Of a stretch of 64,000 bases of DNA, positions 22,301-63,818 are shown in pieces. The stretch comes from Rhodosorus marinus CCMP1338 (taxonomy: Eukaryota > Plantae > Rhodophyta), in assembly GCA_029953675.1 (NCBI GenBank), contig JAMWBK010000012.1, forward strand, positions 992,001-1,056,000. The letters are read 5' to 3'. The translations under genes and the position numbers were made by a program. Under the pieces are notes generated by a model. That model searched no databases. It saw only the letters and a program-made list of their open reading frames with translations, and was not told the origin of the DNA. How positions within the stretch are numbered: the first letter of the stretch is position 1; each line of letters begins with the position of its first letter.

Positions 22301-22359
22301 AACTACCGAACTTTTTTTTGAAAGTTTGATGAACGTTTTTGTTGTCATGATCACGAAGC

Positions 22360-23050: not shown

Positions 23051-23085
23051 ATTGAATGTTGTGCTGGGAAGAGGGGGTGGAGAAG

Positions 23086-24166
23086 ATGGTGGAAAGTTGT
23101 GGATTTGTTTTTGATGTTGGTGTTTGGAGAAGACGGAATGTTGGGGTTGGAGTGAAGCGATGTGGGGTGGATCGTAGTGCAAAGGTGTGGGCTGGTGGTG
23201 GTCGGGGTGGGGGTGCGTGGCTGCCGCCTCGAGGAGGAGGCTTTTTTGGACGATTTGGTGGCGATGGGGAGGGTGGCAAGCCAAACGATCGGTTCGTTTT
23301 GGGTTTGGGAATCGTTGGAGGTGTTGAGATTGCCAGATCGATTGAGAAAAGGTGAGCTCGTTCGGAAAACGCTTCTTCTTTTATGAATTTCGTGTATTGC
23401 TGAAGTATTGAACCTCAGTTTTTGTTTGCTACCTTTTTCTGGAACAAGTGAGGGGCTGGGTAGGCGTAATTTGAGCTGGCCGTACATCCTCATCGGCTTG
23501 AACATACTTGCGTTTATTTTGCAAGGTTTCATGGGGGATAAGCTGACGATGATGGGTGCCAAGGTGAATCGGGCTATTGCTGAGGGCCAGTTCTATCGGC
23601 TGCTAACGTCGATGTTCCTTCACGGATCTCTGGGACATCTCCTGGTGAATAGCCTGAGCACCTACAGCATCGGGCCGAGCGTGGAGAGCTGGTTTGGGAA
23701 AAGGCGGTTCATCGCACTCTACCTTTTCTCTGGCTTTTGCGGAAACCTGATGAGCTTCTACTTCCTCCCTCAGCCCTCCATTGGCGCTTCCGGCGCAGTC
23801 TTTGGACTCCTTGGTGCCCTCGCGTTCTTCCTTCTCCGACATCGAGGTCTCATACGAGGATCAGAACGCAATCTTACGAGGTTTGCATACGTGATTGCGA
23901 TTAACTTTGCCATGGTAGGAATCTCCACTCATTGTACTACCACCTACTCCTGTTCCGAAACGACAATACCCTCTAACCGACGTCTTTATGAACTTCTTCA
24001 GGGGCTCTCACCCAACTCTCAGATCGATAATTTCGGACACCTCGGAGGTCTCCTTGGAGGTGTTATGTTCTCCTACCTAATCGGTCCAAACCTCACCATC
24101 GAACGCGTCAGAGGCAGACCTGTCCTAGTCGACCGACCGCTGCTCACCCAGGCCATCCGTAAATGA
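23086..24166 (+). CDS. Plastid rhomboid protease (RBL10-like)
   Basis: Transit-like MVESCGFVFDVG...; donor at 23352; intron 23915-24001; YRLLTSMFLHGSLGHLLVN, IGASGAVFG and IDNFGHLGG. Confidence 0.92.
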
Positions 24167-34299: not shown

Positions 34300-34745
34300 A
34301 GCACGAACTTTTTTGCAGAGGGGAGCGATTGATCACACCGACCGTTGAAGAATCCATCGGAGTCCATAATTTCAATTCGTTGACGCAGGAGCGGTAACTG
34401 AAGAAGAGGTTCTTGTTCAAGGTTGGGTTGCGGTCGCCACCTTTCTTAGAAGTTCTTAGAAATAGGGACTTGCGTTTGATGTAGTAGGCGGTAACTCCAA
34501 CGCACGAATCAGACTCCCCAGCCAAAAGCCGTCCTTGTCTGGTAGGTTTCGACCCCATGGAACTTGGACTTGTAGTCCAATGGCGCTCGCATCGTTCGCC
34601 TGTGAAACCTCAGAATTTTGTCAACACAGGTACCTCCGTTCCGACAGGGGTTTGGTGCACACTCGTTCCCATCTTCAATCGGCTCCGTACGGAACGTTGC
34701 GTATCTGGAACAGGAAACACTAGTAAATCGAAAGTCCTTAACGTA
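34300..34745 (-). pseudogene. Partial paralog of the astacin-C2-EGF-C2 gene (EGF and second C2 only)
   Basis: Aligns by eye with 47940-48370; encodes [19 protein letters not shown] and a frameshifted C2. Confidence 0.85.
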
Positions 34746-35810: not shown

Positions 35811-35859
35811 GCAAAGCCAAACGTAACCCCAGAGCATCGCAGACGTCCTAGTATGGGAC

Positions 35860-36290
35860 CCCGCCGGCAGACCCTCAGCACATGTGGACCTCGCCGTCAC
35901 ATGCCCTGTGTCAAGTAGCCATCTGCCCTCTGCCGCTCTCCGCCGGGGGAGGGGGGAGCAGCTTCTGTCCTTCCCCGACTGAAGGAACGGCGGTTGCCGA
36001 GAGCATAGCCGGTCTCCCCTGGGCAGAAAGCCGTTATCACATGTTCCAGCCTTTCATTGCGGAAGCTTTGGGCATTTGGAAAAGTCAGTGGCATGGCTTA
36101 GCAAAGGTTTGCTAACCATCCTGTTGAACATCCGGGACTCCTACGCCGTTTAAGTGTCGTTCTTGGCCGATATTTTAGCAGCTTGCTCGCCGAGGCGCAC
36201 CATCGACGCCTGGGTTCGCATACTTTTCTCCCTGGCTCCTAGTTCCCTTTCACGCCCTGCGTAGCGCTTCGGGCTAGGAAAGGCACCACT
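35860..36290 (+). mobile_element. CRE-like RLE retrotransposon 3' fragment, 'family B'
   Basis: HVDLAVTCP...AA..RG, MFQPFIAEALG; ends in ctagttccctttcacgccctgcgtagcgcttcgggcta. Confidence 0.8.
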
Positions 36291-36419
36291 TGACGCAATT
36301 ATTTTCCGCGTCGATAATCAACCATCATCCTCACGACGTCTTAGGGTTATATGGGGTTCAAGGCAAGCACACTCAAGGCGCTCTAAAGCACGAAAAGTCC
36401 CAATCATGGGTACATAGTT

Positions 36420-37195
36420 TTCCCTCTGTGAAAGGCGCCCGAACCCGACGACATACGCGGATCTTGAACGTGACATAGCGCGAACTTCGGCCTATCGTAA
36501 TGCGAGCCAGTCTTGAAATTGAACGTGAGAACCCCTTGCCTGTCGCGCCGTGGGCCTCGTGGTCACCTCTGACTATAAGCGCCGTTCCACGTACTTTGAT
36601 CTTCCTGTTCCTAGTCCTCAGGCGAGTCGTTATTTGCCGGCTGCGGGAGTGCGCCGTGGATTTGCCGCTGCCAGTATGAGTTGAAATATGCGCAGGCTTT
36701 GTCTTCCCCAGGGATGCGTGTCTCGGCTCTAGCTCATCGCCCGGTACCTCTGGTGATTGAGTGCTTTGGGTTTGTGGATTCTTGGTTCTCATTGGCTTCG
36801 GGATGAGGATTTTGGCCAGGTTTGCTCAAGGCCTGCAATAGTTCCATTCGTAGCCCGGGGGGTCCAGAACAGCGTCCACGACGGGAGGTTCGGAGTAAAT
36901 TCCCAGATCAGACTCTCTGAGCGTCAGTTCAATGCAAAATATTGAAACGATGCTACATCATGTGTCTATAGATACGTGCTCTTCTTGCGGGAGGTGATCT
37001 CCAGAACCGTGAAAAGGATCGAAAAATGGCAGCGAACACCCTGACCGTATGCCCGGAGTTTTTACCCGTTTTAAAATTTCTTGCTGTGGCGTATTAACGC
37101 TGCTTTGATGTTGGAGGCGCACGATGTTCGCCGCCGCGCTTAGTCTTTTGTTTCCCTCGGGTTTTTTCAGTCTCCAAGTAAACAAATTCATCAAA
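36420..37195 (+). mobile_element. Old 'family A' CRE fragments (internal 36420-36800; 3' tail ~37085-37195)
   Basis: VKGARTRRHTRILN and PLVIECFGF match ORF 51857-53083; the tail reads cagtctccaagtaaacaaattcat. Confidence 0.8.
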
Positions 37196-37664: not shown

Positions 37665-40600
37665 TTATAAGGTGCACATACAGAAACCTTCTGGATCTAA
37701 CCTCACAGTCTGGGGTTTTCATGCAGAAGAACAACATAATGGTCAGATGATCAGATAAGTGAAAAGCAAGGTAGGGACAATTCCCCCCGTAATTGATACG
37801 GTTGCCGTCGAGAAGAGCTCATCTGCTCTAAACACTTACAGCGCAACTTCTTTCCTTTCCCCAGTCCTCAAGCGCTTTGCATGTACCGGTCACTTTGTCG
37901 ATGCACTGGCCTTCAGGACAATCTAGACACCAGCAAGCCCCAGTGCTCTTTAGAATGAAAGGTGTCTATGGCGTGGATACAGTAGGTGATTAGAGGAAGG
38001 AGGTGGAAGAGGTCAGATACGTATTTGGATTGATTCAGGAAACTTTTTCGTATCGAGAGGAAATACATACCGCGTCGGGGTGGCAAAACAACTTGGCAAA
38101 CCTATCAAGAGTATCACAGGCCTTGGTCCTGAAATTAATGCAGGTGCTCTCATGGTCGCCGCAACACTGACACTTTCCTGGCTCATCTTCATCTAAGAAC
38201 ACGATACCTTGCTGTTTGCGTAAGGGTACATAGAAAACGTGATACCGTTCGCAGTTAGCTCTCAGGAAAGGACTTCATTTCTCTGTATTGTCTTCCTTAC
38301 CGGAAAACCGGGACAGGTGAGATGCACTGAGATGCCGGACGCAATTGGTTGACATTCACCATTCGGCGTGACGCAATTATCAACGGAATCACAACAGCGG
38401 CATTCATAATTTTGTTGTGAATCCGCGTAGGGATTCCCGCAGCCCGAACTTTTTTTGAAGTCCGCCAACTTGGTACACTGCCTTGGGGAAAAAAGCTCGC
38501 CAGGCAGGAAACAAGAGTCAGCGGACTCACCAGCAACTTTACAACAACCGCATTGACCACCGTCAGTGAATACTACCTGCTCTCATCACAAACAGCAGGT
38601 TCACGGAACATCTGAATGAGGTTACGGAGAGGGGTGCATGGAAAAATGCAAATAAGAATCGTTTGCTGAGTATTCTCACTTCAGAGCTGCTGCACGTAGT
38701 TGACGAGTACGCTGAAGTGCTGACACAGGTTGCATTGTCTATTCCACCGTCCAAGTTCACACAGTCGCTAGAGTCCGCCCCGCAGCACTCGCATTTTTCC
38801 GTGTTTTCATTCTTTACTGCAAGCTGGAAACGGCACAAGGGCGAATTTCGCGGTCAGTTTTAAACACATGGAATGTTGAGCAAAACGAAATTGTCCAAAA
38901 CTTACGACGTGTTGCGGGATTTTCGGCAAGCTCTCGCAGACTGCTTTTGCGCTATCTGATGACACTGACACGCAAGTGTTACTATCGTCCAGGCATTGAT
39001 CGGCTGGGCATCTAGAAACGCAATGGCAAAACCCATTCTCGTCCGGCGCACCGAGTGACGCACCGAGTTCTGAACCGCAAAACCCGGCAGCATACTTGTC
39101 ATTGTCAATGCATTGACCGAAAATGACGCACTGGTCCTCCCCAACCGCAGTTCTGCAGCATTCACAGTTGCCGGAAGCGTCGGCGTGCGGAAAAAGTCCG
39201 TTGCAGTTGGAACTCGAAAAAGCTTGGCGTGAGACGCATTGTTGATCAGCATTGACACAAGAATTTTCATTATCTCCAACACCTGGGCAACACTCGCAGG
39301 CTCCGGGGGCCGCCTTGGCAGGCGCGAACTGAAATAGAGGTAAGGCACCCAAAGTGTTATGTGAGTCGGAGTTCGTTTCTAGTCCTCCATGGGGCACAGG
39401 TCGGAGGATTCGGGGAAGGAAATCGAGGGAAGACCGCACAGGAAAATCCGTGAAGATTTTCAACTGCGAAATTCACGAATTGATTTCCGAAGTTGAGTGC
39501 ATGGAATTTGTCAAAGGCAGTCTTACCTGGCGCCCGAACGGATCGGCTGCTGCTTCGGCATCACAAGCTGTTTTCCTTTCTGCGGGTCCCACACACTTTT
39601 GCTGATCAGTGTCGAAGCAGTGGTCGGGAAGCGAGGCACAACACTGACATAGCCCTTCCGAGTCGGTAATAGCGGACTGTGTTAAGAGGAACCACCAAAC
39701 GAGTTCAGCAGGTCAGATCCTTCAGCAATCATCTGAGATACCCCAGACACGCCCACGCCATGACTGTCCCAGAAGAAGAAAGGGAGAATGATGTTGCTCG
39801 AAGATACTCACGGAAAATGTACAATCCGATCCGAAATCAGCTTCACTAATACACTTGATGCCGCCCGCATCCGAATCAACGGAGAAACATGAGCCTTGTG
39901 GACAGCAGGAACAACTGCCATGGTCGTCCTTGTACAAAAGTGAACCTGGCCCCCCCTACACAAAAATCATCGTAAAGCGGGAAATGGTTATTGAGCCAGG
40001 AGTGCACCCGTCAAAAGAGTCCAGTCGAGGATCAGTGTAGCCTACCGCATCGCAAAACGCAGAGGATTCGAGACTAAGGCATCCCTGGATTGGGTCAAAG
40101 CATTCGTTTTCTCCGCACGCCACCGCTTCACACTGACAAGAATTGTCAGATGGGTCTATGACGGCAACCTGAGAGGATGACGTAAACGTTTAGTTCATGT
40201 ACTTCCAGGTGTGTGACGAGCTTTGTGCGGGCATACCTCGGAGGAACTACATGATTGTGATTCAAAGTCTGAAACCTTTACGCAGCCGTTAGTCTCATCA
40301 ACGCATACATCAGTTTTGCTTGGGTCGCATCTACATCCACAAGCACCAGTATCGGGATCCTTAAACTCTTCCTGAAGAAAGAAGTGGTCCAATCATATTT
40401 TTATCAGAGGGTGCCCGCATTTGTGAAAGCGAACGGAGACTTTGGTCTTACCCCCAGGTCACCGCACGCATAATCGCTCGTTCTCACACACGTGCCGCTG
40501 TCATTGCATGCACTATTAGGGCAACTATCACAGGTCAGCTTCAAAGTGCAGAGAAACTCCTTTCGACCTCCTCCTATCCTCGTTTCGTCGCAGATGCCTT

Positions 40601-41171
40601 CGGTGGTCGTTTGAGGACTGATATATGCCTTTAGTTGTAGTTGCTCATCAACTTGGTTGGGTCCGTTGATGATGGCTCCGGGGGAAGAAACCACCGCAAA
40701 TCCGAGGAACTGGAGATCCGATCCGCAGCAAGGTATCTCTAGCACGGAGATTGCGCTCGGACAGAAGACAAGGCTGGCCTTGTGAACATGCGGTGAATTC
40801 AGACTGGCCACAGTTCGCTTGCGGGTATACCTCGACGATTTGCTGGTGATGGGGTCTCCTTTCTTGTGGACCCCTGCCCTCAGCTTCAATATTGATTCAT
40901 CCGTGCTGGGGACGGTGAACTTGGCGCGAAGGCACGTTCCTCCTGGTCTAGAGCTTGTAGGGGCTCTAACAATAGTTGAGATACAGACCTCCCCGTGTTT
41001 ACTATCAAGACGATCGATAAGATCAAAGCACGCACCCTCGTAACCAAACAGACCCTTCTTAGGGTCTGCGTCACATGTCGTGGCACCCGCCGTAAGCCTT
41101 AAAACGACCATGCTCAGCAGCACGAACGCTGCGAGTCGATGCATGTTTCCGACAAAGGCAGACGCAGACAT
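37665..41171 (-). CDS. Secreted Cys-rich modular protein (~808 aa, 11 exons): signal peptide, unassigned Cys domain and ~13 Cys modules
   Basis: Exons 41171-40452, 40371-40237, 40168-40046, 39955-39812, 39676-39527, 39328-38906, 38823-38680, 38576-38301, 38211-38071, 37965-37840, 37709-37665. All are multiples of 3 with GT-AG ends and no stops. Hydrophobic N-terminus MHRLAAFVLLSMVVLRLTAGA. Confidence 0.85.
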
Positions 41172-41277
41172 CTCGCGTAATCGATTACTGTTCTGCCCGA
41201 CACGTTCAGTCCACAGTTTGTAATCCGCTTTGCTTGCGCTGTACACGCGCACGCTGCTTCCCAGTACATGCGGACGC

Positions 41278-42500: not shown

Positions 42501-42762
42501 AACGATAGCCTGGTACGAATCGAACGAATGGTTTAATCGGAGGCTGAAAAAAAAAACCCCGAGGGGAAAAAAAGACTAAGCGCGGCGAAGTACTCGCGCC
42601 TCCAACATCAAAGCGGCATTCATGCGCCACAGCAGGAAACTTAAGCGGGTAAACAACGATTGAAGACGGTCAGGGCGTTCGCGGAACAACTCCCGAAGCC
42701 AGCGAGAACCAACAGAGTCCATGAACCCAAAGCACTCAAAAAACGATAGCCTGGTACGAATC
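42501..42762 (-). mobile_element. 220-bp 5'-truncated young family A retrocopy with a 21-bp target-site duplication
   Basis: aacgatagcctggtacgaatc at 42501-42521 and 42742-42762; the insert is near-identical to 51803-52020. Confidence 0.95.
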
Positions 42763-42980
42763 AGTGTTTCAAGCACGTGACGCAAGTTCTGGAACGGACT
42801 TTGTATAACATAATAAACCCATAGGATAAATCGGGCCGCTCCCTATAAATCATATGAGCAGGAAACAAAAGGTTTGGCTTGGAGTCTGCTAACAATGGAA
42901 GGATAAATTGATAGGCCCTTTCTCAAGTGCACCCTCCGACTTTCTGTGAATGTGACTCGCAACCAGAACACAGAGGGTTG

Positions 42981-43383
42981 TGTTGAAACTGGAAGTTCTG
43001 TAAGCGTTCTGGGCTCATAACCGGTTGAAACTGGAAGTTCTTACAGAGCTATAGGGACCCGTCGAGGCGCAAACACCGTACCCTTTTACTCGAGCCACCC
43101 CTCCGAGCACAGAGTGGCTTAGCAAAGAGCGGCTTAGCAGCTCCTATATATGGTTGTGCCAAGTGGGTCGGGTTTTTCGCTTGCGTACCCCTCTAAACCC
43201 CCCTGTTTTCGCGGGTTTAACTACTTCTGGGTCGTAAACAGCAAAAAACCCGTTCCCACTCGGCACCACCCTCACATATATGCTAGACTGCTCTGTGCAT
43301 TGTTACTAGATATAGGGGTAATTGGTTCTAATATAAGCTCTAGACTAGTATGAGGTGCCTAGATCACATATCGAGTTCCAACA
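42981..43383 (-). mobile_element. Copia-type LTR (43383-43023) with half-tRNAiMet PBS (43022-43009) and a duplicated LTR end (42981-42999)
   Basis: On the - strand: TGTTGG...TTTCAACC GGTTATGAGCCCAG aacgcttac AGAACTTCCAGTTTCAACA; TATATA near 43145. Confidence 0.8.
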
Positions 43384-43559
43384 AATTGGCCGGCGGAGAT
43401 GCAGATTCTGTATAATAATATTAAGAATATTGTTCAATCCTGAAGCAGTTTAGGTTTCTAAATGTTGATAAGGGTAGCCGGCTACGGCTACACCACAGGG
43501 GTAGCAACCTTACCGCAGTTGGGGAATTGTTCCGCGATCGCCGTGACCGTCTGTCCTCG

Positions 43560-44070
43560 TTGTTTACCAGTTTAAAAGTCTCTTGCTGTGGCGTATGAAC
43601 GCTGCCTTGATGTTGGAGGCACGCGATCTTCGCGGTTTAGTATTCTTTTTTTCCCGCTCAACTGTTTTTCTTTCAGTCTCCGATTAAACAGATTCATTCC
43701 GTAGGGGAAGATAATATCGGTTCCATGGTGGATAAGCACTATGCTAGTGTTGAAGGAGAACCGCCAATCGTAGTTCGAGGCTACGTTTGGCATGAGAGTA
43801 CTTACTGAATGCATTTGTGGCAAAGCCCGGGGGCGATGGCGCTCTTCGGCGAGCATGCTATCCCCAGAGAGCGACACTTTCCCGGGGTAGGAGTCCAAGA
43901 TATTCAACCAGGTGGTCAGTAAAACATTTCCGCAGCCACTCCAAGCCGAGCTTTTCCAGATGCCCAAAGCTTTCCACAATGAAATGCTGGAACCTGTGAG
44001 AACGGCCCTCCTGCGCGGGGGAGACTGGCCATGCTCTCAGCATTTCGTCGTTTCTTCAGTCGGCGAAGTA
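43560..44070. mobile_element. Old family A tail (+, 43560-43700) and family B fragment (-, 43790-44070)
   Basis: Tail cagtctccgattaaacagattcattc; the B fragment encodes EGRSHRFQHFIVESFGHLEKLGLEWLRKCF. Confidence 0.8.
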
Positions 44071-45074
44071 CAGAAGCTGCTGGCCCGCGGCCAAGAGCGG
44101 CTGAGAAAAAGGTGCGTCACCTGGCGTTCCCGAGTCATCCCCCAGGTCAGGACTCTCCAGGCCCGTTTGAGCTTAACTTCCGAGTTTGAGATAGAATCGG
44201 GTGCCTATGTTCGAGAGGTGTGAACATGACTCACAAATATGCTTGAGTATTGAAAATAGCATGGGGTGATGGTAATAAGGGGGAATTCGGCTGGAAGGGA
44301 TAACCGAACTAGAGAACTGAGGTCACCCCAAATATCCAAATATCATTTGGGAGGGGGAAGCTGGGAATGCCTTCGGGCATTGGAAATACCAGCTACAGAT
44401 GTTCTCCGACTCAAGGGAGTCGCGAACGTCCTGGTGGACGACAGTGGACAGTAAGGATTCAGTATACGTATATGTGGTATTAGCCAGGACTCCGGCTGGA
44501 CAAGCGCTGGATATCGTCATCGGTGCAGGAGAAAACCCGCGGCACAAGGGGAGTCCGAAAGAGGCACGATACGACGGCCGCTGAAAGCGAGGACTCCGTC
44601 GGCGAGAGACGACCTATTTTCTCCGTCGATGATCAACTATCATCCTCATCACGTTTCAGGGTTATATAGGGTTCAAGCCAAGGACCCTCAAGGCGCTCTA
44701 AAGCAATGCGAAAAGGCCCAGTCTAACGGCTATCGTCATTGTTCAGACCTCCTTCTTCGATAACAACGAACGTGCATTTACTTATTCAATCTTAAACGAA
44801 ATCTTTTGCTTCAATATGAAAGAATGGTTGCCCAATGTTGAGAGCGGACTAATTTCCAGGACTGACTTGCGGAAACACGCGATGCCATGTTGTCAAGTGC
44901 CACACCAGTGAAAAAACGGTTCCAAGCTTCTAGGAACAAAGGTGGACTTTCTCTTCCCGTTTGGGTTTTCGCGTTTACCGGCGGTACTACTGCTACTAAA
45001 TTCGAATTACCTGCCGATGGGACAACCCTAGAATAATGAGTGTGAGTGGGGTAAAAGCCACTCACACACACAGA

Positions 45075-46190
45075 TCTCGAAGTGCGCACCGCTCTGCGCT
45101 AATACCTCGGCTTGCATCAGTCGCTCTGGCCTTCCGAGATGGATTCGCCGTGCCCTCTAACCCCTCTATCTCTTAGAACGAAGGTACCGCGGATTTTGCC
45201 GCACACCTGCTCGCCAGCTGCCACGCTGTGAAAGGCGCCCGAACCCGACGACATACGCGGAACTTGAACCTGTTATACCGCGAACTTAGGACCTATCGTA
45301 CAGCAAGCCGGTCTTGAAGTTGAGTGTGAGAAGCCCCTGCCTGTCGCAGACTACCAGAATGATGAACGCCGCGTGGCTGACCTCGTGGTCACCTGTGACG
45401 ATAGGCGCTGTACGATTTACGTTGATCTTGCTCCGCCTAATCCTCAGGCTAGTCGCTATTTGCCGGCTGCAGGAGAGCGCCGTGGATTTGCCGCTGCAAG
45501 TATGAGACGTCGCAAAAGGTTGAAATATGCGGGTCCTTTGTCCTCCTCAGGGATTCGTGCTTCGGCTCTAGCTCGTCGCCTGGTGCCTCTGGTCATTGAG
45601 TGCTTTGGGTTTTCGGTTGTCTTTTTCGTTGGTTCTCGTTTGCTTCGGGAATTGTTCCACGAACGCCTCGACAGTCTGTCCAGTAGAACTAGCAAGTTCT
45701 TGCTGTGGTGTATGAACCCTGCTTTGATGTTGGAGGCGCGCGACCTTCGCCGCCCTTCGTCTTTTTTTTTCCGTCGGGTTGTTTTTTTCAGTCTCCGATT
45801 AAACAAATTCATGCAGAATAAACGCCCCTAACGCCCTGATCGTCTTACCTCATTGTTTACCCCTTTTCAGGTACTTGCTCTGGCTTATGAACGCTGCTTT
45901 GCCGCATGAATGCCGCTTTGATGTTGGAGGCGCGAGTACTTCGCCGCGCTTAGTCTTTTTTTCTGGGGTTTTTTTTTCAGCCTCCGATTAAACCATTCGT
46001 TCGTTCGGTGTTAGAGGCGAACGCGATATTCGCAGCGGATAGTCCTCTTTTTTTTCTCGGTTTTTTTTCTTTCACCTCCAAATTCATTCGATTTGGAGAA
46101 ACGCGCGATATACGGCGCAAATAGTCTTTTTTTTCTCTCCGGGTTTTTTGCTTTCAGTCTTCGATTGAACAAATTCATTGAGAATAATGA
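45075..46190 (+). mobile_element. Family A 3' portion (45075-45815) followed by a stack of family A 3' tails
   Basis: ADLVVTCDDRRCTIYVDLAPPNPQASRYLPAAGERRG...LMLEARDLRR; further tails end near 46006, 46090 and 46180. Confidence 0.85.
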
Positions 46191-46489
46191 AAATAAAAAA
46201 GCCAAAGACGGATGACCGATCCTCCACTCCTCCAATGCCTTTTTGGACAGTATTTTGTCAGGAAATACCGGCCTTTTTAGAACTGTTGCACTTTTTATTG
46301 GAATAAAAATGAGTAGATACAAGGCTGTTGAGGACGAAAAGCCGATCCGCACCTCCAACGGCACTTTTTTAGGGCGGGTCGGGTGCTCTTGAGATACTTG
46401 AGTATTTTGTGGAAAATCCAGTCGTGAAGAACGGAAAGAACGGACTGCTTTGTTAGTGGTGGTTTTACTGGGCTTTTTACTAACAGAGC

Positions 46490-47600
46490 CTGATGCGCTA
46501 CTCAAGACGTAAAAGGAAGCTAGGGACTAGGAAGGAGAGCCTGTAAGCCCAGGCGACGGTGGCGCGCCTCGGCGAGCATGTTGCTAGAATACCGCCAGAG
46601 AGCGACACTTAAACGGCGGAGGAGCACCAGAGATTCTTCTGAATGTTCGGGAAAACATTTACGCAGCCACTCCAAGCTTGACTTTTTCAGACGCCCAAAG
46701 CTCTCCACAATGAAAGGCTGGAACCTGTGAGACCGGGTCTCTTCCCGGGTAAGACTGGCCATGCTCTCAGCGTACGGTGTCGTTCCTGCACGCGGCGAAG
46801 CTTTGTTGGTAGTGTTTCATCGGATGCATTTACCCTCATAGCCTGAAGCGCTACGCAGAGCGTGAAAGGGAACTGGAAACTAGGAAGAAAACGCGCAAAC
46901 CCAGGCGGCGATGGCGAGCCTCTGCGAGTATGCTGCTAGAAGATCCCCAGAGAGCGACACTTAACCGCCTTAGGAGTCCAAGATACTCTTTGTTGGTCAG
47001 CAAAACATTTCCGCAGCTACCCCAAGCTGGACTTTTCCAGATGCCCAAAAATTTCCACGATTTAAGGCTGGAACCTGTGAGAACGGCCCCTTGCAAAGGG
47101 GAGACTGGCGTTGCTCTCAGCAAACCGTCGTTCCTTCACTCGGCGAAGGACAGGAGCTGCTGGCCCCCAGGCAAAGGGCGGCAGAGGGGAGATAGATACT
47201 TGACACAGGGAACGTGACAGCGAGGTCCACATATGCTGAGCGCCTGGCGGCGGGGAGTGTTTTATTTGTCCGTGCGGTTGGCGTCATACCTTCAAGATGC
47301 TGCGCGGGTCGGAATACGAGTTAGAGCTTGGTACAGGGGACTTTATAATCGTGCAATCCAAGGCGGCATTAGATCCTCGGATAACACTTTGCTGGAATAA
47401 TTCCACAAAACGACAGTACTCGGCGTAGGAGTACAACATCCTCTGCAGGGTGGGCGGCAAAGCATTTGCGAAGCCGGTTCAACCTTGAGTTTGAAGATGA
47501 CCAAACTTTCTCCCATTCAGGGACGGCTGAAAGTTGTGCGCCCTGCCCTCTGCGCGGTAGAGGTTGGCCACGCCGTCCGCTCTTTCGGCAAAGTCAATGT
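46490..47600 (-). mobile_element. Three family B 3' fragments in tandem (46490-46800, 46838-47240, 47370-47600)
   Basis: RSHRFQPFIVESFG..EWLRKCF..LLRRLSVALW..ML.EARHRRLG in each; the first two carry the GTAGCGC-N-TCAGGCT end. Confidence 0.8.
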
Positions 47601-47829: not shown

Positions 47830-49379
47830 CTAGCTGCTATGTGAATACGTGATATCGACGTATCTACTGCAACTCGAAGAATCGCAAATGCGCGCTGTTC
47901 TTGTTCCAGAGAACGGCACTCCGAGGGAAGTTGTCCTCGTGGGGAGCAATCTATCATCCTGACCGTTGAAGAATCCATCCGAGTCCATAACTTCAATTCG
48001 CATGCTGATCCAAGAGCGATAACCAAAGAAGAGGTTCTTGTCCCAGTTTGGGTTGTGGTCGCCACCCTTTTCAGAAGTCCTTAGAGATAGGGACTTGCGG
48101 TCGATGTCGTAGGCGGAAACTCTAACGTACGGATCAGACTTCCTAGCAAAAAGGCCGTCCTTGTCTGGCAGGTTTCGCCCTCTTAGAACTCAGACTTGCA
48201 GGAGTCCAATGGCGCGCTCGCACCGTTCACCTGTGATACCTCGCCTGCAGATGCAAGTGAAGTCCGCGAGTCGGTCAACACAGGTATCCCCGTTCCGACA
48301 GGGGTTTGGTGCGCACTCGTTCCCATCTTCAATCAGCTCCGTGCGGAACGTTGCATATCTGGAACACGAAGTGGGAGCGCCGCAGGCGGTCCGTACCGAG
48401 CTTCCTCTGTAAAAGAGGGTCAGCTGTTCGTGCACGAGGACATCATGAGCACCCAGTAAATGGAATCATGACCTGAATTCGCAAGTATTGCCACTTTCCA
48501 AGCCCGAAATCAATCTTTTCGTTCCATGTCGGGGAGCTGTCGTTGCTAATCACTTTTGTGGTTCGAACTATGGAGTTTCCATCTGCATCCACAGCGGTTA
48601 CTCTCATGAACGGATCCGATTTAGCGAAGTGGAAGCAGCACGTGTCACGGTTGGGGAAGTTGTAGCCTGGAGAGCTGTGACTGCAAGCCGCCCGTCTTTT
48701 CCGTCATTCGGGCACTCATACATACGGTTGACGGTGAGAATGTCGAGGGAGGTCAGGTCTGTAGAACCTCCGATGGAGCCATTAGATATTCGCCTCAGCG
48801 TGTTCTGCCCGTTCTTGCTAAAGAAATCTTCCTCGTAGTGCATGATCGAAGCAAAGTCGTACCTAAGTCCCTGATGGTCAACGTTGTCCCAGGACTGCTT
48901 ATCGAAATTGTGTTCTTTTCCTGACTCAATGCTCTGCGAGAGTACTCTGACAAAGCTGTCTCTGTCTGGGCGCGACTGTTCATGGAAGAGACCAATACTG
49001 TGTCCAATTTCATGAAGCGCTATCGAGGAGGTGCTGCTGAATCCGTCGTGGCATATTGGACCCAAGTTGATCTTCTGGCGTCCTCAGCGACGTCCGACGT
49101 CGCTTGAATAGCAGAGACTGTTGTCGCTCTCGAACACTATCCTGTCGTCCGCATGTCTTGACTCGAAAAACCTTAGGCAAGTCGCGCTTTCATACCTGTC
49201 CATAGCGTTCCGGACATTTGTCCTCGTATGTAGTGGGACACCATTGTCGAACTCATCGTCGACCCTCCGAGAATGCCACCTCTTGCCCTTGTCCCGGATC
49301 GATCCGTTCTAGCTGCCCAACCGGCGATCGAAACCAGGAGCACCAGGGTCAATACGAACTTTGAGTTGGGTTGCATCAT
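47830..49379 (-). pseudogene. Intronless secreted metalloprotease pseudogene: signal peptide, astacin (M12A), C2, EGF, C2
   Basis: HEIGHSIGLFHEQSRPDRD and Met-turn SIMHY; C2 KSDPFMRVTAVDADG..PTWNEKIDFG; [37 protein letters not shown]; second C2 NLPDKDG..SDPYVRV..NPNW..VMDSD. About three frameshifts and two in-frame TGA. Confidence 0.88.
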
Positions 49380-50094
49380 CTTTGTTTTTACGTGAAAACC
49401 GAAGAAGTCTTCCCAATAGCTATCCTTCTTTTGCTGATTGCTTGCTTGAAGTGGTCACCTCTCTCGAAAGTCGTAGCCGACTGGGGTCCTTATATAACCT
49501 CTGAGTTGTCTTCCTCGGCACTGGAGGAGCTACCGCTGATGGTGAGATGAGAGAACTAGCTTCCGCAGACAGACAGAGGAGGATGACTCAGCTGGCCACC
49601 TGCTAGGCTGGCGTGCGCTCAGCAACTGGCCAGTGAGCTTGGTTCTAGTCATAGGTGGCTGATTGGATTGTTTTGAACAATTGAGCAGGCTGCGCAACCC
49701 CTGAAATGTTTCAAAAAAAATTGAGACTGCGAACTTAGTAAACCCACCACTTTAACAGGCTTTTCAACAATCCAAATCAAAGGATAAACATATTTTTCGA
49801 ATAGCGAATAGAGTAATGACTGGCGCTGCTGCTCGGCCTGATCAGCTGGCTGCAGTCCTCTGTAAATGTGCTTAGCCAATACTGGCTTTATTAGCCAATA
49901 CCAGAGCTTGGAAAACGTCCTCAACATCGAAAAAACTGCTACACTGCTGGATGTGGTAGATGGGTTACTTGCTTGTGGCGAGCAAACTCTCTCACGTACC
50001 CCGGAAACTAATAAGCCCAACAATCTCGCCAGAAGTCCGTCGCTGGACCAAAGACATTTCAAGCCAAGTACTGATTTCGAAACACCGCGTTCAA

Positions 50095-50308
50095 TCGGAC
50101 GTCGCTGAGGCCGCGAGAAGATCAACTTGGGTCCAATATGCCACGACGGATTCAGCAGCACCTCCTCGATAGCGCTTCATGAAATTGGACACAGTATTGG
50201 TCTCTTCGATGAACAGTCGCGCCCAGACAGAGACAGCTTTGTCAGAGTACTCTCGCAGAACATTGAGTCAGGAAAAGAACGCAACTTCGATAAGCAGTCC
50301 TGGGACAA
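50095..50308 (+). repeat. 214-bp inverted duplicate of the astacin active-site region (partner 48884-49097)
   Basis: Near-identical reverse complement, including the premature TGA; third Zn ligand changed H to D (GLFDEQ). Confidence 0.92.
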
Positions 50309-51801: not shown

Positions 51802-53031
51802 ACGAACGAATGGTTTAATCGGAGGCTGAAAAAAAAACCCCGAGGGGAAAAAAAGACTAAGCGCGGCGAAGTACTCGCGCCTCCAACATCAAAGCGGCAT
51901 TCATGCGCCACAGCAGGAAACTTAAGCGGGTAAACAACGATTGAAGACGGTCAGGGCGTTCGCGGAACAACTCCCGAAGCCAGCGAGAACCAACAGAGTC
52001 CGTGAACCCAAAGCACTCAATGATCAGGGGTACCAAGCGATGTGCTAATGCCGAAGCACGAACACCAGGGGAAGACAAAGCCCCCGCGTATTTGATCTCT
52101 TTGCGGCGTCTCATGCTGGTGGCGGCAGATCCACGGCGCTCCCCCGCAGCCGGGAGATAACGACTAGCTTGAGGGTTAGGAACAGCAAGATCAACGTATG
52201 TGGTACGGCGGCTGTCGTCACAGGTGATCACCAGGTCGGCTACACGGCGTTCATCATTTTGAAAGTCCGCGACGGGTAAAGGTTTCTCACGTTCGATTTC
52301 CAGACCGGCTTGCCGGACTATAGGCCGAAGTTCCCGGTATAACAGGTTCAAGATCCGTGTGTGGCGGCGGGTTCGAGCACCTTTCACCGCCGGGCAACTA
52401 GCGAGCAGGTGGGCGCCAAAATCTGCGTTGTCTTCAGTCTGAGAGCAGAGAGGGCACGACGAACCCATCTCGTACGGCCAAGGGGGCTGATGTAAGCCGA
52501 GGTATAAGCGCAGTGAAGTACGCACTTCGAAATCCGACAGTGTGAGTGGCGGAAAGGCTGGTACGGTCATGAGCCACTGAGAGCTAATAACCCCTCCAAG
52601 ACTACGTAGGCGGGCGCGAGCGCGAGAAGATGAGACCATCTGCGCGAGGAGTCGGCCATATGCAGCACGGTGCAAGTCCCAAGAAAGGATATTTTGCAGC
52701 GCATCCGTGCGTGCTTGAGCTCGGCTCCCAGCGCGCTGGGAATCATCAGGAGGATCAACTGGAACTTCTTCTTCTGCGGCAACCACTGGGTCAATCTCCC
52801 CTAGAACAGGTTCAGGCGCAGGACGAATCCCCGGGGCGGAGCCTCGAGAGCGGTCAAATACAGCTCGCCAGTCAGGAAGACGGGGTTGAACGGTTTCGGG
52901 GAGACTAGTACAGGAATTCAGGGCGGTTTGGAGCTCCAGAAACAAGTCTTGGGCGCTTTCCGGTACGCTGGGAAGCAAGACACCCCGCGAGAGGCTCGCC
53001 ATCAAATTGCGGAACTTCGAGATACCCAAGC
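51802..53031 (-). mobile_element. Young 1.23-kb 5'-truncated family A CRE-like element (RT C-terminus, CCHC knuckle, RLE) with an 11-bp TSD
   Basis: Uninterrupted ORF with CPLC..GAHLLASC (CCHC), RRHTRI, RRVADL, YVDLAVPNP, RRKEIKY, PLIIECFG; TSD atatcagtact at 51791-51801 and 53032-53042; (TTCG) tail. Confidence 0.93.
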
Positions 53032-53275
53032 ATATCAGTACTTGGGTCGGACCGGATTTGGGTCTCAACCACTTTGGCTCCAATTTTTATGTCGTCCTGT
53101 TGAGAATTTTATACTTTGCTTTATACTTTTTACAGTGTATCTAAGGCCGTAACAGCCTAGAACACTCCTTTTATGTATAGAACAACCATAATATTTCAAA
53201 ACGCTTTTCAGAACGAATGAAATATTTTCTCTCCGTAGATTTAGGATTTTTTTTGTTTCTCCTAGAAAGCACAGT

Positions 53276-54200: not shown

Positions 54201-54229
54201 ACTGGTGGTTTTGACGGCATTATTAGCAT

Positions 54230-55124
54230 AGCGTAAAGCGCTACGCAAATCGTTAAAAGGAACTAAGAACTAGGTAGGGAAGCGGGCAAACCCAGGCGCC
54301 GATGGCGCGCCTCAGCAAACATGCTGCTCGAATATCGCCACAGAGAGACACTTAAACGCCGTAAAAGTTCCAAGTGTTCAACAGGATGCTCAGTGAAACA
54401 TTTCCGCAACCACTCCAAACCCGCCTTCTCCACATGACCAAAGCTCTCCACAATGAAAGGCTGGAATCGGTGGGAGCGACCCTTCAGCGCGAGGCAGACT
54501 GGCCATACTCTCAGCATACCGTCGTTCCTTCACGCGGCGAAGGGCCGAAGCAGCTGCTCCCCGGCGGCGGGCGGCAGCCATGAGATGGGCGCTTGCCACA
54601 GGGCATGTAATCGCGAGGTCAACATATGCTGAGCGTCTAGCGGGAGCATCGGAGGCGAGGAGATCTGCGAAACAACGGGGCGGTGCCCTATCCGAGACCG
54701 ATCTGGGTAGTTCCGATTCCAACTCAACCCTGGTGGCTTTAATAATATAGCCTGATGCGCTACGTAAAACGTAAAAGGAAACTAGGGGCTAGGAAGAAGA
54801 GCATGTAAGCCCAGGCGACGGTGGCGCGCCGCGGCGAGCATAGTGCCAGACTACCGAAAGAGTGCGATACTTAAACGGAGGAGGAGCACCCCTTGTAGAT
54901 CTTGTCCACGGTCCACCATCATTTTGTCCTCAGCGCGTTCACTCGAGCTCTATTGGGCTAGGAAGAAGAGCATGTAAGCCCAGGCGACGGTGGCGCGCCT
55001 CGGCGAGCATGGTGCCTGACTACCGACAGAGTGCGATACTTAAACGGCGGAGGAGCACCCCTTGTAGAACTTGTCCGCGGTCCACCATCATTTTGTCCTC
55101 ACCGCGTTCACCGTAGCTCTATTG
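54230..55124 (-). mobile_element. Family B copies (54230-54722; 54750-55124, including a 169-bp tandem duplication)
   Basis: FADLL..AYVDLAITCP..AARRRGAAASALRRVKERRY; units 54787-54955 and 54956-55124 are near-identical. Confidence 0.85.
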
Positions 55125-55135
55125 CAGGTCGAAAT

Positions 55136-55235
55136 CTGGGCTCATAACCATTGAGCGAGTTTGAGCCAGACCATCTATCCTTTTATCTTGGTTCTTACTC
55201 ATTAGTGATCTCGCACTATCTGAGCTATTCGAACA
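55136..55235 (-). mobile_element. Short LTR-like segment (55235-55150) with a perfect half-tRNAiMet PBS (55149-55136)
   Basis: On the - strand: TGTTCGAATAGC...CTCAAT GGTTATGAGCCCAG. Confidence 0.6.
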
Positions 55236-55699
55236 CCTGGGTGGTCTGTTGAGGGTTTATGGTGTTGGCTTGGGTGAGTTTTAGGTTATCAGAGTGTTTG
55301 TTCGTAGGAGGCGCTGCCTTCCTTTGTCTTTCCCCGTGGCTTTTTGGGTGTGCGGCTTGTCGGCCGGCTTTCTCTCCTTTTCTTGGGGTTGTGATCGAGG
55401 TTTCGGGGTGCTTTGTAATGGGTATTAGCCAGTTTTTGCGGGCTTTTGTGATGAAAATTCTTCTAACCACTCCCTTTTGTGATGGCTGGGGTTTCCCCAC
55501 CTCTTCTGGTGGTCGGCGATGCCGTCTATCCGCTGCATTCAGCACCCAGGCCACTCTCAGCAACTGCGACAAAGCATCGTCGAACGTACTCGTCTTAAAA
55601 CTGACCAGATATCTCATCGTTGCTTCGCAGGAGAACCGCCTGCCCTCGCTAACGGCGTACCTGGAGAAATTTCCTACTAACGCGCGTGCCTCTGTCCTC

Positions 55700-58580
55700 C
55701 CCCCCCCTGATTCTGGGGGGAGCTCTAGACCCGCCCTGCCTTCGGTCGTCCGTCGCGGTCCGCCCCGATCATCCCTCCTAATTCTGCTGTGCCCTTCCAT
55801 GCCTCCGGCCAAAACCCCCCTGGGCTTTCCTTGGGGCCGAATCTTGCCCCTGCGAGTGTCACTCGGCCCTCCTATTCCCAAGTCCTTCGTCGGGGCTCCT
55901 CTGAAGAACGCACGACGGCCATGCCCCTCCATGCCTCCGGCCAAAACCCCCCTGGGCTTTCCTTGGGGCCGAATCTTGCCCCTGCGAGTGTCACTCGGCC
56001 CTCCTATTCCCAAGTCCTTCGTCGGGGCTCCTCTGAAGAACGCACGACGGCCATGCCCCTCCATGCCTCCGGCCAAAACCCCCCTGGGCTTGCCTTGGGG
56101 CCGAATCTTGCCCCTGCGAGTGTCACTCGGCCCTCCTATTCCGAAGTCCTTCGTCGGGGCTCCTCTGAAGAACGCACGCCGGCCATGGTGTGTGTGATGC
56201 CTTCCCCCGTGGCGACCGCGCCCGTAAAATACCGTGATTTCCGCGATACGATGGCCTCCTCACTTGGGGTCGCACCATCTGAGTTCCCCTATGCGTATTT
56301 CACTGGATCTTATGCCTGTTTCCTTGTCACAGAGTCTGCTTATCAATTCCTCACCTCGCTCGTCGCCACCCCTGAGCCTCAGCGCTCTGCCCTTGCAAAC
56401 ATGATACTGACTCGTGCCCACGTCTCATTGTTTGTTGAGTTTGACCGCTTCGACGCAGGTTGGGTTCCCCAGTCGGCGCTGCAGAGCCTCCCTTCCACGC
56501 AAGCTCCTGATATCGCGCTGCAAACTCATGCGGCGCGACTTTCACACCTCCAGTCGCTCTTTGCCCGTTTCATCCCCCGTGGTGTCCTGCGCTCGGCGTT
56601 AGAGAACTTCTTCTCCGCTGAGGCCGCTCTGATGGAAGCTCATCTGGCCTTCGACCTCTCGCAAGCCGACTCCTGGCCGCACCTTCTCCCCTCCTCGGGC
56701 AGCTGCAGTTCCTGATGCCGACATGTCGGCAGGCCCCTAGTGCTCCCCGAATCCGCTGGCTTTGGACACCCTCAGCGAAGACTCCGTTCCTGACAATCCT
56801 GTATCTGCCTTCTTTATTTCCTTTAGTTCCTTCGCTCGTCCGCCACGGAAGCGCCGCCGCCTGAGAAACCCTCAGAGGGCCCCCCACCGGATACCCGCAA
56901 CGCCTCCCCGACTGAGGGGAGGCATGATGTCTTGAGTCCTCTACCCCCGCCCGTGTGTCACCCGTGTCCGTCCTGTTCGCCGATGCCCTCTCCACCTGGC
57001 GCGAGCGTCTTTTCTCGTGGTTCTCTGACCTTGTGGCTTCCTTAACGGTGGTGTTATTCCTTTTTGCCGTCAGAGCCCAGCTGTACGGCTCCCTCGTCGT
57101 CTTCTCAAGCCTCCCGCGATGGTTTTGGACTTTTTATGGCAGGAAGTTTCCAATCACCCTCAATGCTCTCTTCGCTGGGATATCCTTTTCTTTTTCCCTC
57201 GCCTCGATCTCACTTCCTCTACTCTCTCGAGCCCTTCACCTCCCCGCCGTATCCACCCTCGGCGCAAGATGCATTTGTTCCTCTCAGGTGACTTTGCAGA
57301 GCTCGAACGTCTCGACTTTGCTTCCCTCTCTTCCTTCTCTACGTGTTCCCCTTCAGATCTAGTCGCCAACAACGGGCGCGTCACGCTATGGCGGTGATCT
57401 CCGGAGGGCTGCCAGTGTCCTCCAGGAACGGCAACCTGTGGTCGAGTATTCTGACGATCTTGAACCTCCGCTACGCTCGTTTTTCCATGCAGCAGGCTCT
57501 GGGTGGGACCCGTCTTTTGACCGGTTCTGGAAGCGTTCCAAGTAGCGTCCAATGAAGGTGAGCGGCTGGTGGTCACCTCGGAGGCTGTGTGTGAGCTGAT
57601 CCAGAAGTGCTCTAAAGGGTTGTTCTCCTGGGCCCCCGGGTTTGCGGGTGGAATACCTCTTTTTTTGGGGGTGGGACGGTATGAAAGCGTTCGCGTCCAG
57701 GTTGGAGGGAATCGTCAACGGCGATCCTTTTTGTGATCGCGCATGGTTTTTGCTGGGACGGACGCAGCTATGTTTGCTCTCCAAAGCGGGTCACACTGCT
57801 TCGACTCCAGCCCTTCGCCCTAGGGGCTTGGTGGGAGTGGCTTGGTGGGAGTGGTCCGTAAACTGGCAGCTCGATGGTTGGTCCAGATTTTGGTCCCCGA
57901 ATCCCGTCGCTTTTTGGACACGCGCAGTTGGGCGTGGGCTACCGTGGCGTCTGTGAATTGCTATCCGTACTTCTTCGCTCGGATCTAGCCTACTCACCGG
58001 ATTACAAGTTATTATCCGTAGACTTTAGTAATGCTTTTAATCGTGTCTCTCGACCGGCCATTATGAATGTGGTGCGCCAGGTCTCCCGGTTAGCTTTTCC
58101 TTTTTTTCGTAGCCTTTACTATTTGATGGGCCATGGGCCAACTCGTGACACCCTCGGCCCTTCCTCGCACTCCTTTGAGGCGCTTACCGGGGTTCAACAG
58201 CGTGACCCGTTGGTGCACTTTTTGCAGGCCTGTGGGCTTCAGGTCGTCGCTTAACCTGCGCTCAGAGTTCCCGGAGGTCCTCACAATGGGTTACGACCAT
58301 CTCCGCACAATGGCATCCCTCGTCTATCTCGAAGTCAATCATGCGAAGTCGCTCTACTGAGGAGGAGCGGATATTCAAGAGCAGCAGGTCCCCCCGCGTA
58401 TCCGGGATATTTGGCATTGGGAAAGGTTTGTCCACCTGGACATCTCCTATGGGTCCGCGTCGTTCGTGGAGGGTGAGTTGTCGCAGATTCTGAGTAAGCA
58501 CCGCCAGCTGGTCTCGGAGCTCCGTCGGCTGCCTCGCGGGGTTTTTTCTTTCAGCCTCCGATTAAATAAATAATTCATTC
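55700..58580 (+). mobile_element. Internally deleted, decayed CRE/SLACS-clade element (5' region, RT and family A tail)
   Basis: RT motifs QLGVG, VDFSNAFNRVSR, GVQQ(R)DPL and LEVNHAKS; the RT joins directly to the tail gggttttttctttcagcctccgattaaa at 58538. Confidence 0.85.
55789..56184 (+). repeat. 3 x 132-bp (44-aa) tandem repeat in the CRE 5' ORF
   Basis: atgcctccggcc at 55799, 55931 and 56063; unit MPLHASGQNPPGLSLGPNLAPASVTRPSYSQVLRRGSSEERTTA. Confidence 0.95.
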
Positions 58581-62380: not shown

Positions 62381-62483
62381 GTCCGCGGATGTGGTGGGCC
62401 GAGCACTAGTTCGTCGCACTTCAGCGTCGGCATTGAGTGTGCGCGAGTGGCTTTTTTGGCAGGCTGTTCTCGAAGGTCTCAAG

Positions 62484-63818
62484 ATGGACAATTCTCAAAT
62501 TCGATACGTCGTTCTGATGCTCATAGTCGCTGCATGCGCGAGCGGAGTTAAGCTTGGCGATGGGAAACCGATGCTGGCGGTCAGGCCACCGGGTAGTACT
62601 GTGTGCGACGCGGAGCTGCTGCCAACGCAGTTCGTAAAGGATTTCCAGGAGACATGCTTCCCTCTACTCGACATTGATCAGCGCGAGCTTGGGACCATGT
62701 GCACGTCTACGATGGACACGGGCTCGAAGAAATGTGTGCGGGTCAGATTTACTGCTATTACAAGCAACTTGAGGAGCTTGAAGGTAGGCATCTACCAGGA
62801 CTGCAACATGGTCCCAGACAATAATCCGTTCACCCACATCAAAACAGCATCGGGCTCAACAAAAACAAAGTCGGTGACCATTTGCCCCGATGAGATCGAA
62901 GCAAATACGAACTGCTGCGAAGCCAATCTCTGCATGGCGGCAGAGGGATCAGTGAAGAAGCGGGGCGCAGTCTTAAAGGTCAGACCAGGCGAGGGCTGCT
63001 CCACGGGTACAAGCGGCAACGGAAACGGACGTATTTGTCCCCTTATGTTGAACTGCGTGAACGTAGTTACTGGCACAAACGGAGCTGACATCCTGATGGG
63101 GACGAACTACGTTGACTACATCTACGGGTTGGGTGGAAATGATACCATCGACTCGTATGCAGGAAACGATGTAATCTTTGCGGGAAGCGGCGATGACTAC
63201 GTTAATGCCGGATTCGGAAACGACAAGGTTTACGGGGAAGACGGGGATGATTACGTTTACGGCGACAACGGTGATGACTACATATCAGGTGGAGATGGCA
63301 TGGACAACCTTAGCGGCGGCAATGGGGATGACGAGATTAAAGGCGGTAAAGACGAGGACGATATATTTGGTGGAAATGGAGATGACAATCTGCTAGGTGG
63401 AGACGACGATGATTTCATCCAGGGAGGAGCTGGCAACGATCGCATCCGCGGATACGACGGTAACGACCTACTGCGTGGCAACCATGGGGACGACAATTTG
63501 GGCGGTGGCTCCGGCGATGATTACATGCAGGCCGGTTATGGAAATGACGTGGTGAACGGAAATTCCGGGGACGACGGCATTTACGATTACTACGGTAATG
63601 ACATTCTCAAGGGCGGAGGCGACAACGACAACATCGCAGACTTTTTCGGAGACAACTTCGTCGACGGCGGTGGGGGTAATGATATCATCAATACCGGAGA
63701 TGGCGATGACGAAATCCTCGGTAAGGAAGGCGACGATGATATTACGAGCGGTGGAGGGTTTGACGTTATTGATCCAGGACCGGGAAACGATACTGTCGAC
63801 GGCGTACCAAATCTTTAA
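62484..63818 (+). CDS. Secreted protein (444 aa): signal peptide, unassigned Cys domain and 27 RTX (GGxGxDxLx) Ca2+-binding nonapeptides; intronless
   Basis: ATG 62484 MDNSQIRYVVLMLIVAACASG; uninterrupted 9-residue repeats from GTNGADILM to PGPGNDTVD. Confidence 0.92.
   Translation: MDNSQIRYVVLMLIVAACASGVKLGDGKPMLAVRPPGSTVCDAELLPTQFVKDFQETCFPLLDIDQRELGTMCTSTMDTGSKKCVRVRFTAITSNLRSLKVGIYQDCNMVPDNNPFTHIKTASGSTKTKSVTICPDEIEANTNCCEANLCMAAEGSVKKRGAVLKVRPGEGCSTGTSGNGNGRICPLMLNCVNVVTGTNGADILMGTNYVDYIYGLGGNDTIDSYAGNDVIFAGSGDDYVNAGFGNDKVYGEDGDDYVYGDNGDDYISGGDGMDNLSGGNGDDEIKGGKDEDDIFGGNGDDNLLGGDDDDFIQGGAGNDRIRGYDGNDLLRGNHGDDNLGGGSGDDYMQAGYGNDVVNGNSGDDGIYDYYGNDILKGGGDNDNIADFFGDNFVDGGGGNDIINTGDGDDEILGKEGDDDITSGGGFDVIDPGPGNDTVDGVPNL

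Follow-up and report, generated by a model that had tools for sequence, protein, structure and literature searches.

A probable recent pseudogene of an intronless, secreted astacin-C2-EGF-C2 family in the red alga Rhodosorus marinus

We analyzed 64,000 nucleotides of the genome of Rhodosorus marinus CCMP1338, a red alga of the class Stylonematophyceae (positions 992,001 to 1,056,000 of the 1.16-Mb contig JAMWBK010000012.1; hereafter the window, to whose numbering all coordinates refer), and within it a minus-strand locus at 47830-49379 (JAMWBK010000012.1:1,039,830-1,041,379). From an ATG at 49379 to a TAG at 47832-47830, this locus encodes the remains of a signal peptide, an astacin protease domain, a C2 domain, a calcium-binding-type EGF module, and a second C2 domain. 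The DNA is algal, as had been supposed in an earlier reading made from the letters without database searches (the sequence-only reading): the product of an open reading frame (ORF) at 27014-28213 shares 99% identity with NDN08_005004, the citramalate synthase of R. marinus, and the window matches assembly GCA_029953675.1 exactly over the 22 kb that were compared. That reading was also exact in its coordinates and in the order of the domains, each of which we recovered by Pfam, and the features it singled out, namely the signal peptide, the full zinc site, the Met-turn, and the EGF of calcium-binding type lodged between two C2 domains, are all present. What its title did not mention is that the reading frame is broken at five sites.

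All modules lie on the minus strand, where they are spread over three frames of the translation. The part coding for the signal peptide (MMQPNSKFVLTLVLLVSIAGWAA, 49311-49379) is in a frame that differs from that of the remainder and aligns with the signal peptides of two intact relatives, A0A7S2ZTJ2 and the L001 ORF, described below. The astacin (M12A) catalytic domain at 48709-49284 matches PF01400 over the whole profile (189 of 189 positions; 169 bits, cut-off 22.5, E=1.2e-49), with its zinc-binding motif (HEIGHSIGLFHE, 48979-49014, matching HExxHxxGxxHE) and its Met-turn SIMHY, including the tyrosine ligand (48835-48849, matching SxMHY), intact. Two matches to PF00168 (31.6 and 37.7 bits, cut-off 22) correspond to a first C2 domain at 48331-48693 (E=2e-7), which has frameshifts at both ends, and a second at 47833-48210 (E=2.5e-9), which has an in-frame TGA near its start. 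Between them, at 48217-48327, lies the EGF module (DGNEC...C.C...G..G..CE; PF00008, 32.4 bits against a cut-off of 21.5, E=1.1e-7), which is of the calcium-binding type in that it starts with DGNEC (pattern D/N-x-D/N-E/Q-C) and has six cysteines and the conserved aromatic residue. The second C2 domain retains the aspartate clusters of its putative calcium-binding loops 1 and 3 (LPDKD..SDPYV and MDSD....DD), of which D473 and D475 are invariant in 25 homologs, and in the first C2 domain IPF stands at the loop-3 position at which homologs have DxD. About 110 nt 5' of the ATG, a candidate TATA-like element (TATATAAGG, 49488-49496, minus strand) can be recognized.

The five breaks comprise three frameshifts and two in-frame TGA codons. 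The first, a frameshift at 49300-49311, falls between the signal peptide and the mature astacin N-terminus, and the downstream frame is closed on its 5' side by a TAG at 49311-49309. The second is a TGA at 49084-49086, aligned with the conserved glycine of the GxxGGxQ strand; the third and fourth are frameshifts at about 48663 and about 48451, toward the start and the end of the first C2 domain, respectively; and the fifth is a TGA at 48190-48192, near the start of the second C2 domain. With an X in place of each lesion, the conceptual translation can be aligned with intact homologs over its whole length; no lesion is accompanied by surplus sequence, and the two TGA codons fall in conserved alignment columns, so that introns cannot rescue the frame. 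Against a reference of eleven algal-type proteins, the locus keeps 29 of the 29 family-invariant residues and 19 of the 21 near-invariant ones; the complete retention of the invariant residues argues that inactivation was recent on the time scale of the family.

Two fragments of the same sequence lie in the window, as the sequence-only reading had noticed. The first, an inverted copy of 214 bp containing the active site (50095-50308, plus strand), is 97% identical to 48884-49097, with Asp substituted for the third zinc His. It also carries the TGA of the second lesion, which argues that this stop is not a one-off consensus error and that the gene was already dead when the fragment arose. The second fragment (34320-34716, minus strand) is older; it spans the end of the first C2 domain, the EGF with a deletion, and most of the second C2 domain, shows 79.5% nucleotide identity to 47941-48370, and contains several frameshifts. 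At the site of the second TGA of the main copy it has CAA, and its differences from the main copy are spread over the three codon positions (25, 19, and 28 of 139 each) evenly enough to indicate that it has decayed neutrally. This fragment and the main copy thus trace back to a local duplication, each having since decayed on its own. With at least nine intact paralogs in R. marinus in addition to the broken copy and its two fragments, the family fits the birth-and-death pattern proposed earlier.

The surroundings of the locus, from 42 to 56 kb, are dense with dispersed repeats, copies of which occur near 35859-37150, 42530-44105, 45170-47255, and 54220-55123 (approximate boundaries) and are related to the longest repeat ORF at 51857-53083 (minus strand). 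This ORF encodes 407 aa without a Pfam match and shows a weak match (E=1.3e-3) to the CCHC/zinc-knuckle and restriction-like-endonuclease region of an R2 retrotransposon protein (PDB 9nl2); the repeats are probably remnants of a restriction-like-endonuclease-type non-long-terminal-repeat (non-LTR) retroelement.

One could also suppose that the gene is intact and functional, its breaks being errors of the Nanopore assembly or being bypassed by short introns or recoding, and the data behind the assembly speak in its favor: the CCMP1338 genome was assembled from Oxford Nanopore Technologies (ONT) reads with NextDenovo, followed by three rounds of Pilon polishing with Illumina reads (PMC10250338). 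The unbroken set of family-invariant residues and the TATA-like element upstream would likewise suit a living gene. However, two of the lesions are conserved codons turned into TGA by substitution, unlike the indels that are the usual error of ONT reads, and one of these stops occurs independently in the 214-bp duplicate; long homopolymers are absent from all three frameshift sites; intact homologs align across every lesion without a gap, which leaves no room for introns; and no product of the locus is found among the database matches. We therefore regard an intact gene as improbable.

Intact relatives of the pseudogene are found in the same species. An exhaustive HMMER search with A0A7S2ZTJ2, followed by a cluster look-up, recovered at least seven annotated R. 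marinus paralogs (NDN08_001265, 002050, 002057, 002058, 002107, 004243, and 004247) on three other contigs, and two more members, A0A7S2ZTJ2 and A0A7S3A5U5, come from R. marinus transcriptomes (MMETSP). These paralogs and transcripts share with the pseudogene the architecture, the lack of introns, and a signal peptide that adjoins the mature N-terminus, and differ from it in having an intact frame and in sequence (29-41% identity to it). A search with the X-masked pseudogene recovered, as relatives with the full architecture, the R. marinus transcript A0A7S2ZTJ2 (42% identity, 96% coverage), a contig from a sequencing run, and the sponge proteins described below. Outside R. marinus, a profile search found a homolog in the transcriptome of Purpureofilum apyrenoidigerum, another stylonematophycean, and two further intact members, the L001 ORF and P0220, come from the sequencing runs SRR22824282 and SRR22824290. 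These two runs have an identical 533-residue protein in common, and it is also in them that the citramalate synthase of R. marinus has its closest non-self relative (74% identity); the organism they represent is probably another member of the Stylonematophyceae. Identity to the pseudogene amounts to 47.6% for the L001 ORF, 40-41% for the transcripts A0A7S2ZTJ2 and A0A7S3A5U5, and 29-36% for the NDN08 paralogs; overall, the paralogs are 28-48% identical to the pseudogene and to one another. The full zinc motif is kept in the pseudogene, A0A7S2ZTJ2, and A0A7S3A5U5, while most of the NDN08 genomic paralogs have Asn or Asp for the third zinc His or are without HExxH; the zinc site is altered in NDN08_002050, 002057, 002058, 002107, 001265, and 004247, with the remainder of the fold signature kept. 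The altered paralogs may be pseudoproteases or may coordinate the metal differently, and part of the family may serve in ways other than catalysis.

Beyond the algae, two demosponges are the only named organisms with the architecture, which bears out a link to sponge proteins that the sequence-only reading had drawn. H8WG14 of Suberites domuncula (bone morphogenetic protein 1-like) and LOC135335979 and a nas-14-like protein of Halichondria panicea have the same order of astacin, C2, EGF, and C2 domains and align collinearly with the pseudogene at 31-39% identity over 79-95% of the query, the alignments of H8WG14 and LOC135335979 covering more than 85% of the length. The sponge genes are intronless like the algal ones; they have a single exon and often lie in tandem, and the C2 aspartates and EGF cysteines are conserved between the two sets. 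Unlike the algal proteins, the sponge proteins have a propeptide, long at about 60-220 residues and equipped with an FEGD aspartate switch, and they often contain a third C2 domain or many EGF modules. Most other non-algal members lie on ENA contigs, some of which reach 1-3 Mb. On such Mb-scale contigs the sponge-type genes form tandem arrays of intronless copies, and these contigs are probably sponge host DNA in metagenome assemblies. One member of a non-algal cluster was deposited as a protein of a Proteobacteria metagenome-assembled genome (MCG8624890.1, on a 2.5-kb contig); its cluster-mates are on contigs of 1-3 Mb, and the Proteobacteria label is probably a binning artefact.

Neighbor-joining trees were built from 57 astacin+C2 proteins. 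In these, a split with 93% bootstrap support (472 columns) sets the algal-type sequences apart from all others, the NDN08 paralogs group together at 90%, and the pseudogene falls outside the sponge-type clade. When the astacin domain is analyzed separately, the pseudogene pairs with the L001 ORF at 45% bootstrap support, a pairing that is absent when C2-EGF-C2 or full-length columns are used, and the Purpureofilum homolog pairs with P0220; these pairings would fit a diversification older than the taxa concerned. With outgroups added to the astacin-domain tree, the algal group receives 32% support, the root is not fixed, and the astacin+C2 family is not a clade, as two outgroup sequences fall inside it. 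From the depth of divergence among the paralogs, their presence in at least two stylonematophycean genera, and the split from the sponge-type sequences, it follows that the family is not a recent import; it is old and vertically inherited within the Stylonematophyceae. The sequence-only reading had named a widespread and vertically inherited architecture in red algae as the outcome that would speak against its own view, and this holds in part, as vertical inheritance at least within this one class.

The view in question was that the locus is either a recent acquisition from an animal, specifically a sponge, or a copy made by retroposition (a processed copy). The observation at its root stands: the copy is intronless, as its end-to-end alignment with intact homologs without extra sequence confirms, and most of its neighbors have introns, the gene range exceeding the coding sequence in five of the eight complete annotated genes between 17 and 39 kb, in a genome that averages about three introns per gene (PMC10250338). 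The sponges are moreover the closest named non-algal relatives, and remnants of an R2-like non-LTR retroelement lie nearby. However, the lack of introns is shared by every member of the family that we examined, including functional algal paralogs and the sponge genes: NDN08_002057 and 002058, which are in tandem, each consist of a single uninterrupted frame, as do the L001 ORF, P0220, and the members on ENA contigs, and Halichondria LOC135335979, located inside the span of a BROMI gene, uses 1614 uninterrupted bp for 537 residues. The lack of introns is therefore a trait of the family and not evidence about the pseudogene. No poly(A) tract is found within 600 nt 3' of the stop codon, and no target-site duplication is evident at the locus, a feature for which no systematic search was made; with the absence of poly(A) and a TATA-like element kept upstream, retroposition is not supported. 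Against acquisition of the copy from an animal, its GC content (0.519, against 0.496 for the whole window) resembles that of its surroundings and gives no sign of foreign composition, and its nearest relatives by identity are of the algal type, set apart from the sponge type by the bootstrap-supported split described above. Recent acquisition or retroposition is thus largely refuted, and we consider it very improbable.

Finally, the proposal that animal DNA was joined to an algal contig by contamination or chimeric assembly draws on the unexpectedness of animal-like domains (astacin, EGF) in Archaeplastida, from which a review reports no plant astacins, but is scarcely credible given that the 1.16-Mb contig encloses the locus, which is flanked on both sides by shared dispersed repeats and on one by red-algal housekeeping genes, and that three further large contigs of the assembly carry paralogs, as do the independent MMETSP transcriptomes of R. 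marinus and a Purpureofilum transcriptome.

Altogether, we consider it highly probable that the locus is a recently inactivated, non-processed pseudogene of an old, intronless, multi-copy family of secreted astacin-C2-EGF-C2 proteins in stylonematophycean red algae. Some points weigh against parts of this interpretation. With a Nanopore-based assembly, residual errors could account for some of the three frameshifts; that the two nonsense codons are assembly errors is unlikely. The altered third ligand or missing HExxH in several paralogs means that the family may not be uniformly proteolytic. In addition, the absence of the family from other red-algal classes rests on searches that were not exhaustive for named eukaryotic genomes: no member from these classes surfaced in the algal-profile search, in which EGF-repeat proteins dominated, and because that search did not return the very NDN08 paralogs from which the profile was built, its silence is weak evidence.

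How an old red-algal family came to share a four-module architecture with demosponges is a separate question. A plausible scenario is an ancient transfer of an intronless gene for a secreted astacin-C2-EGF-C2 protein between sponges and stylonematophyceans, in either direction, after which the alga would have lost the propeptide, expanded the family to at least ten copies, and altered zinc ligands in some of them (possible pseudoproteases), and we rate this scenario as a serious candidate that falls somewhat short of even probability. A transfer would be the simplest reading of so patchy a distribution of so complex an architecture. A 2023 review of the astacins proposes that their scattered occurrences stem from transfer out of holozoans; it lists no red algae among the non-holozoan holders, none in plants, and no astacins with C2 domains (PMC9848320). 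Elsewhere in the literature that we searched, an astacin joined to C2 domains is not described, and nothing relevant was found on astacin-C2 proteins in combination with a sponge or a red alga.

In its catalytic domain, the pseudogene resembles the canonical M12A astacins, such as crayfish astacin, BMP-1/tolloid, the meprins, and the hatching enzymes, with which it shares a full-length domain, HExxHxxGxxHE, SxMHY, and the conserved cysteines. By its sequence, this domain is a bona fide astacin, the fold itself being seen only in a model of the paralog A0A7S2ZTJ2. In this AlphaFold2 model (mean predicted local distance difference test score 85.7), the catalytic domain superposes on that of BMP-1 (3edg/3edh) with template-modeling (TM) scores of 0.90-0.92 and a root-mean-square deviation of 2.0-2.2 Å, and the C2 domains match those of extended synaptotagmins, ferlins, and synaptotagmins. 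The algal family departs from the canonical astacins in its C-terminal modules, which are C2 and EGF domains rather than CUB, MAM, TRAF, ShK, or TSP, and in having no prodomain, which, with its aspartate switch, is counted as part of the "conserved core architecture" of astacins (PMC9848320). Perforin (MACPF-EGF-C2), to which the locus had been compared earlier, is likewise secreted and likewise has an EGF-like module beside a calcium-dependent C2 domain. This comparison does not extend beyond analogy: the MACPF domain has no Pfam match and is absent from the fold matches of the A0A7S2ZTJ2 model, perforin is not among the best 50 of these matches, and the C2 folds are of the synaptotagmin and ferlin types.

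The lack of a prodomain suggests how the intact relatives might work. About 60 sponge-type sequences have the FxGD motif, whereas no algal-type sequence does. In every algal-type sequence, only about 20-40 residues, corresponding to the signal peptide, precede the catalytic domain, and the signal peptide adjoins a conserved A/S-x-(V/I)-R...W stretch equivalent to the mature astacin N-terminus. Without an aspartate-switch propeptide, the protease would have no zymogen latency; cleavage by signal peptidase would directly expose the mature N-terminus, and the enzyme may be active as soon as it is secreted. Algal and sponge members alike invariably keep the loop aspartates of the second C2 domain, and we suggest that the two C2 domains, especially the second with its predicted calcium-binding aspartates, together with the calcium-binding-type EGF, could use the calcium of seawater to tether the protease to, or orient it on, an anionic membrane or a matrix at the cell surface, where it might trim surface or matrix proteins. 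The intact relatives are thus likely to be secreted proteases held in place by calcium-dependent C2 domains. At the pseudogene itself, the five disabling mutations abolish the product, and the two local fragments, one of them copied after the first stop arose, attest to ongoing local duplication and decay in a repeat-rich stretch. Because the locus is inactivated, the role in defense or wall remodeling that had been proposed for it could apply only to the intact relatives.

Other features of the window are recorded here in their own right. At 62391-63818 (plus strand) is a gene for a predicted secreted protein with six RTX calcium-binding nonapeptide stretches of bacterial type (PF00353, E=1e-37), here in a red-algal nuclear genome. 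The N-terminal region of this protein, which contains cysteines, resembles (25% identity, E=5e-7) the product of the first exon (40404-41252, minus strand) of a 696-aa gene at 38.5-41.2 kb. The ORF at 40407-41171 is no more than that exon, and look-ups of the exact products of this ORF and of another at 16566-18152 gave no match. Two rhomboid-family genes (PF01694) at 19665-20417 and 23408-24166, both on the plus strand, are 3.7 kb apart; between them lies a low-complexity stretch rich in Pro, Ser, Thr, and His (22262-23562), and the GC skew in 22-24 kb is strong (0.39). At 55790-56000, a 79-nt unit recurs at a spacing of 132 nt with 99% identity between repeats, within overlapping long ORFs (55225-56715) and in a region of high GC content (0.56-0.59). 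A tRNA scan found no tRNA.

Taken by itself, the locus is an ordinary pseudogene, and for annotation its five lesions mark it as such, so that it should not be "repaired" into a gene model. Its interest is that it points to an oddly distributed family whose sequences already stand in public databases under automatic names and which is without a description in the literature that we searched. If the ancient transfer outlined above is true, red algae would be an unrecognized home of astacins and this dead copy a trace of the turnover of the family. Among named organisms, the four-module architecture is confined to demosponges and one class of red algae that are unicellular or filamentous, making it a clean test case for gene transfer between animals and algae. 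Moreover, an astacin that is free of a propeptide and carries predicted calcium-dependent C2 anchors would represent a new and testable form of control over an extracellular protease, in which activity may be governed by location instead of by zymogen activation.

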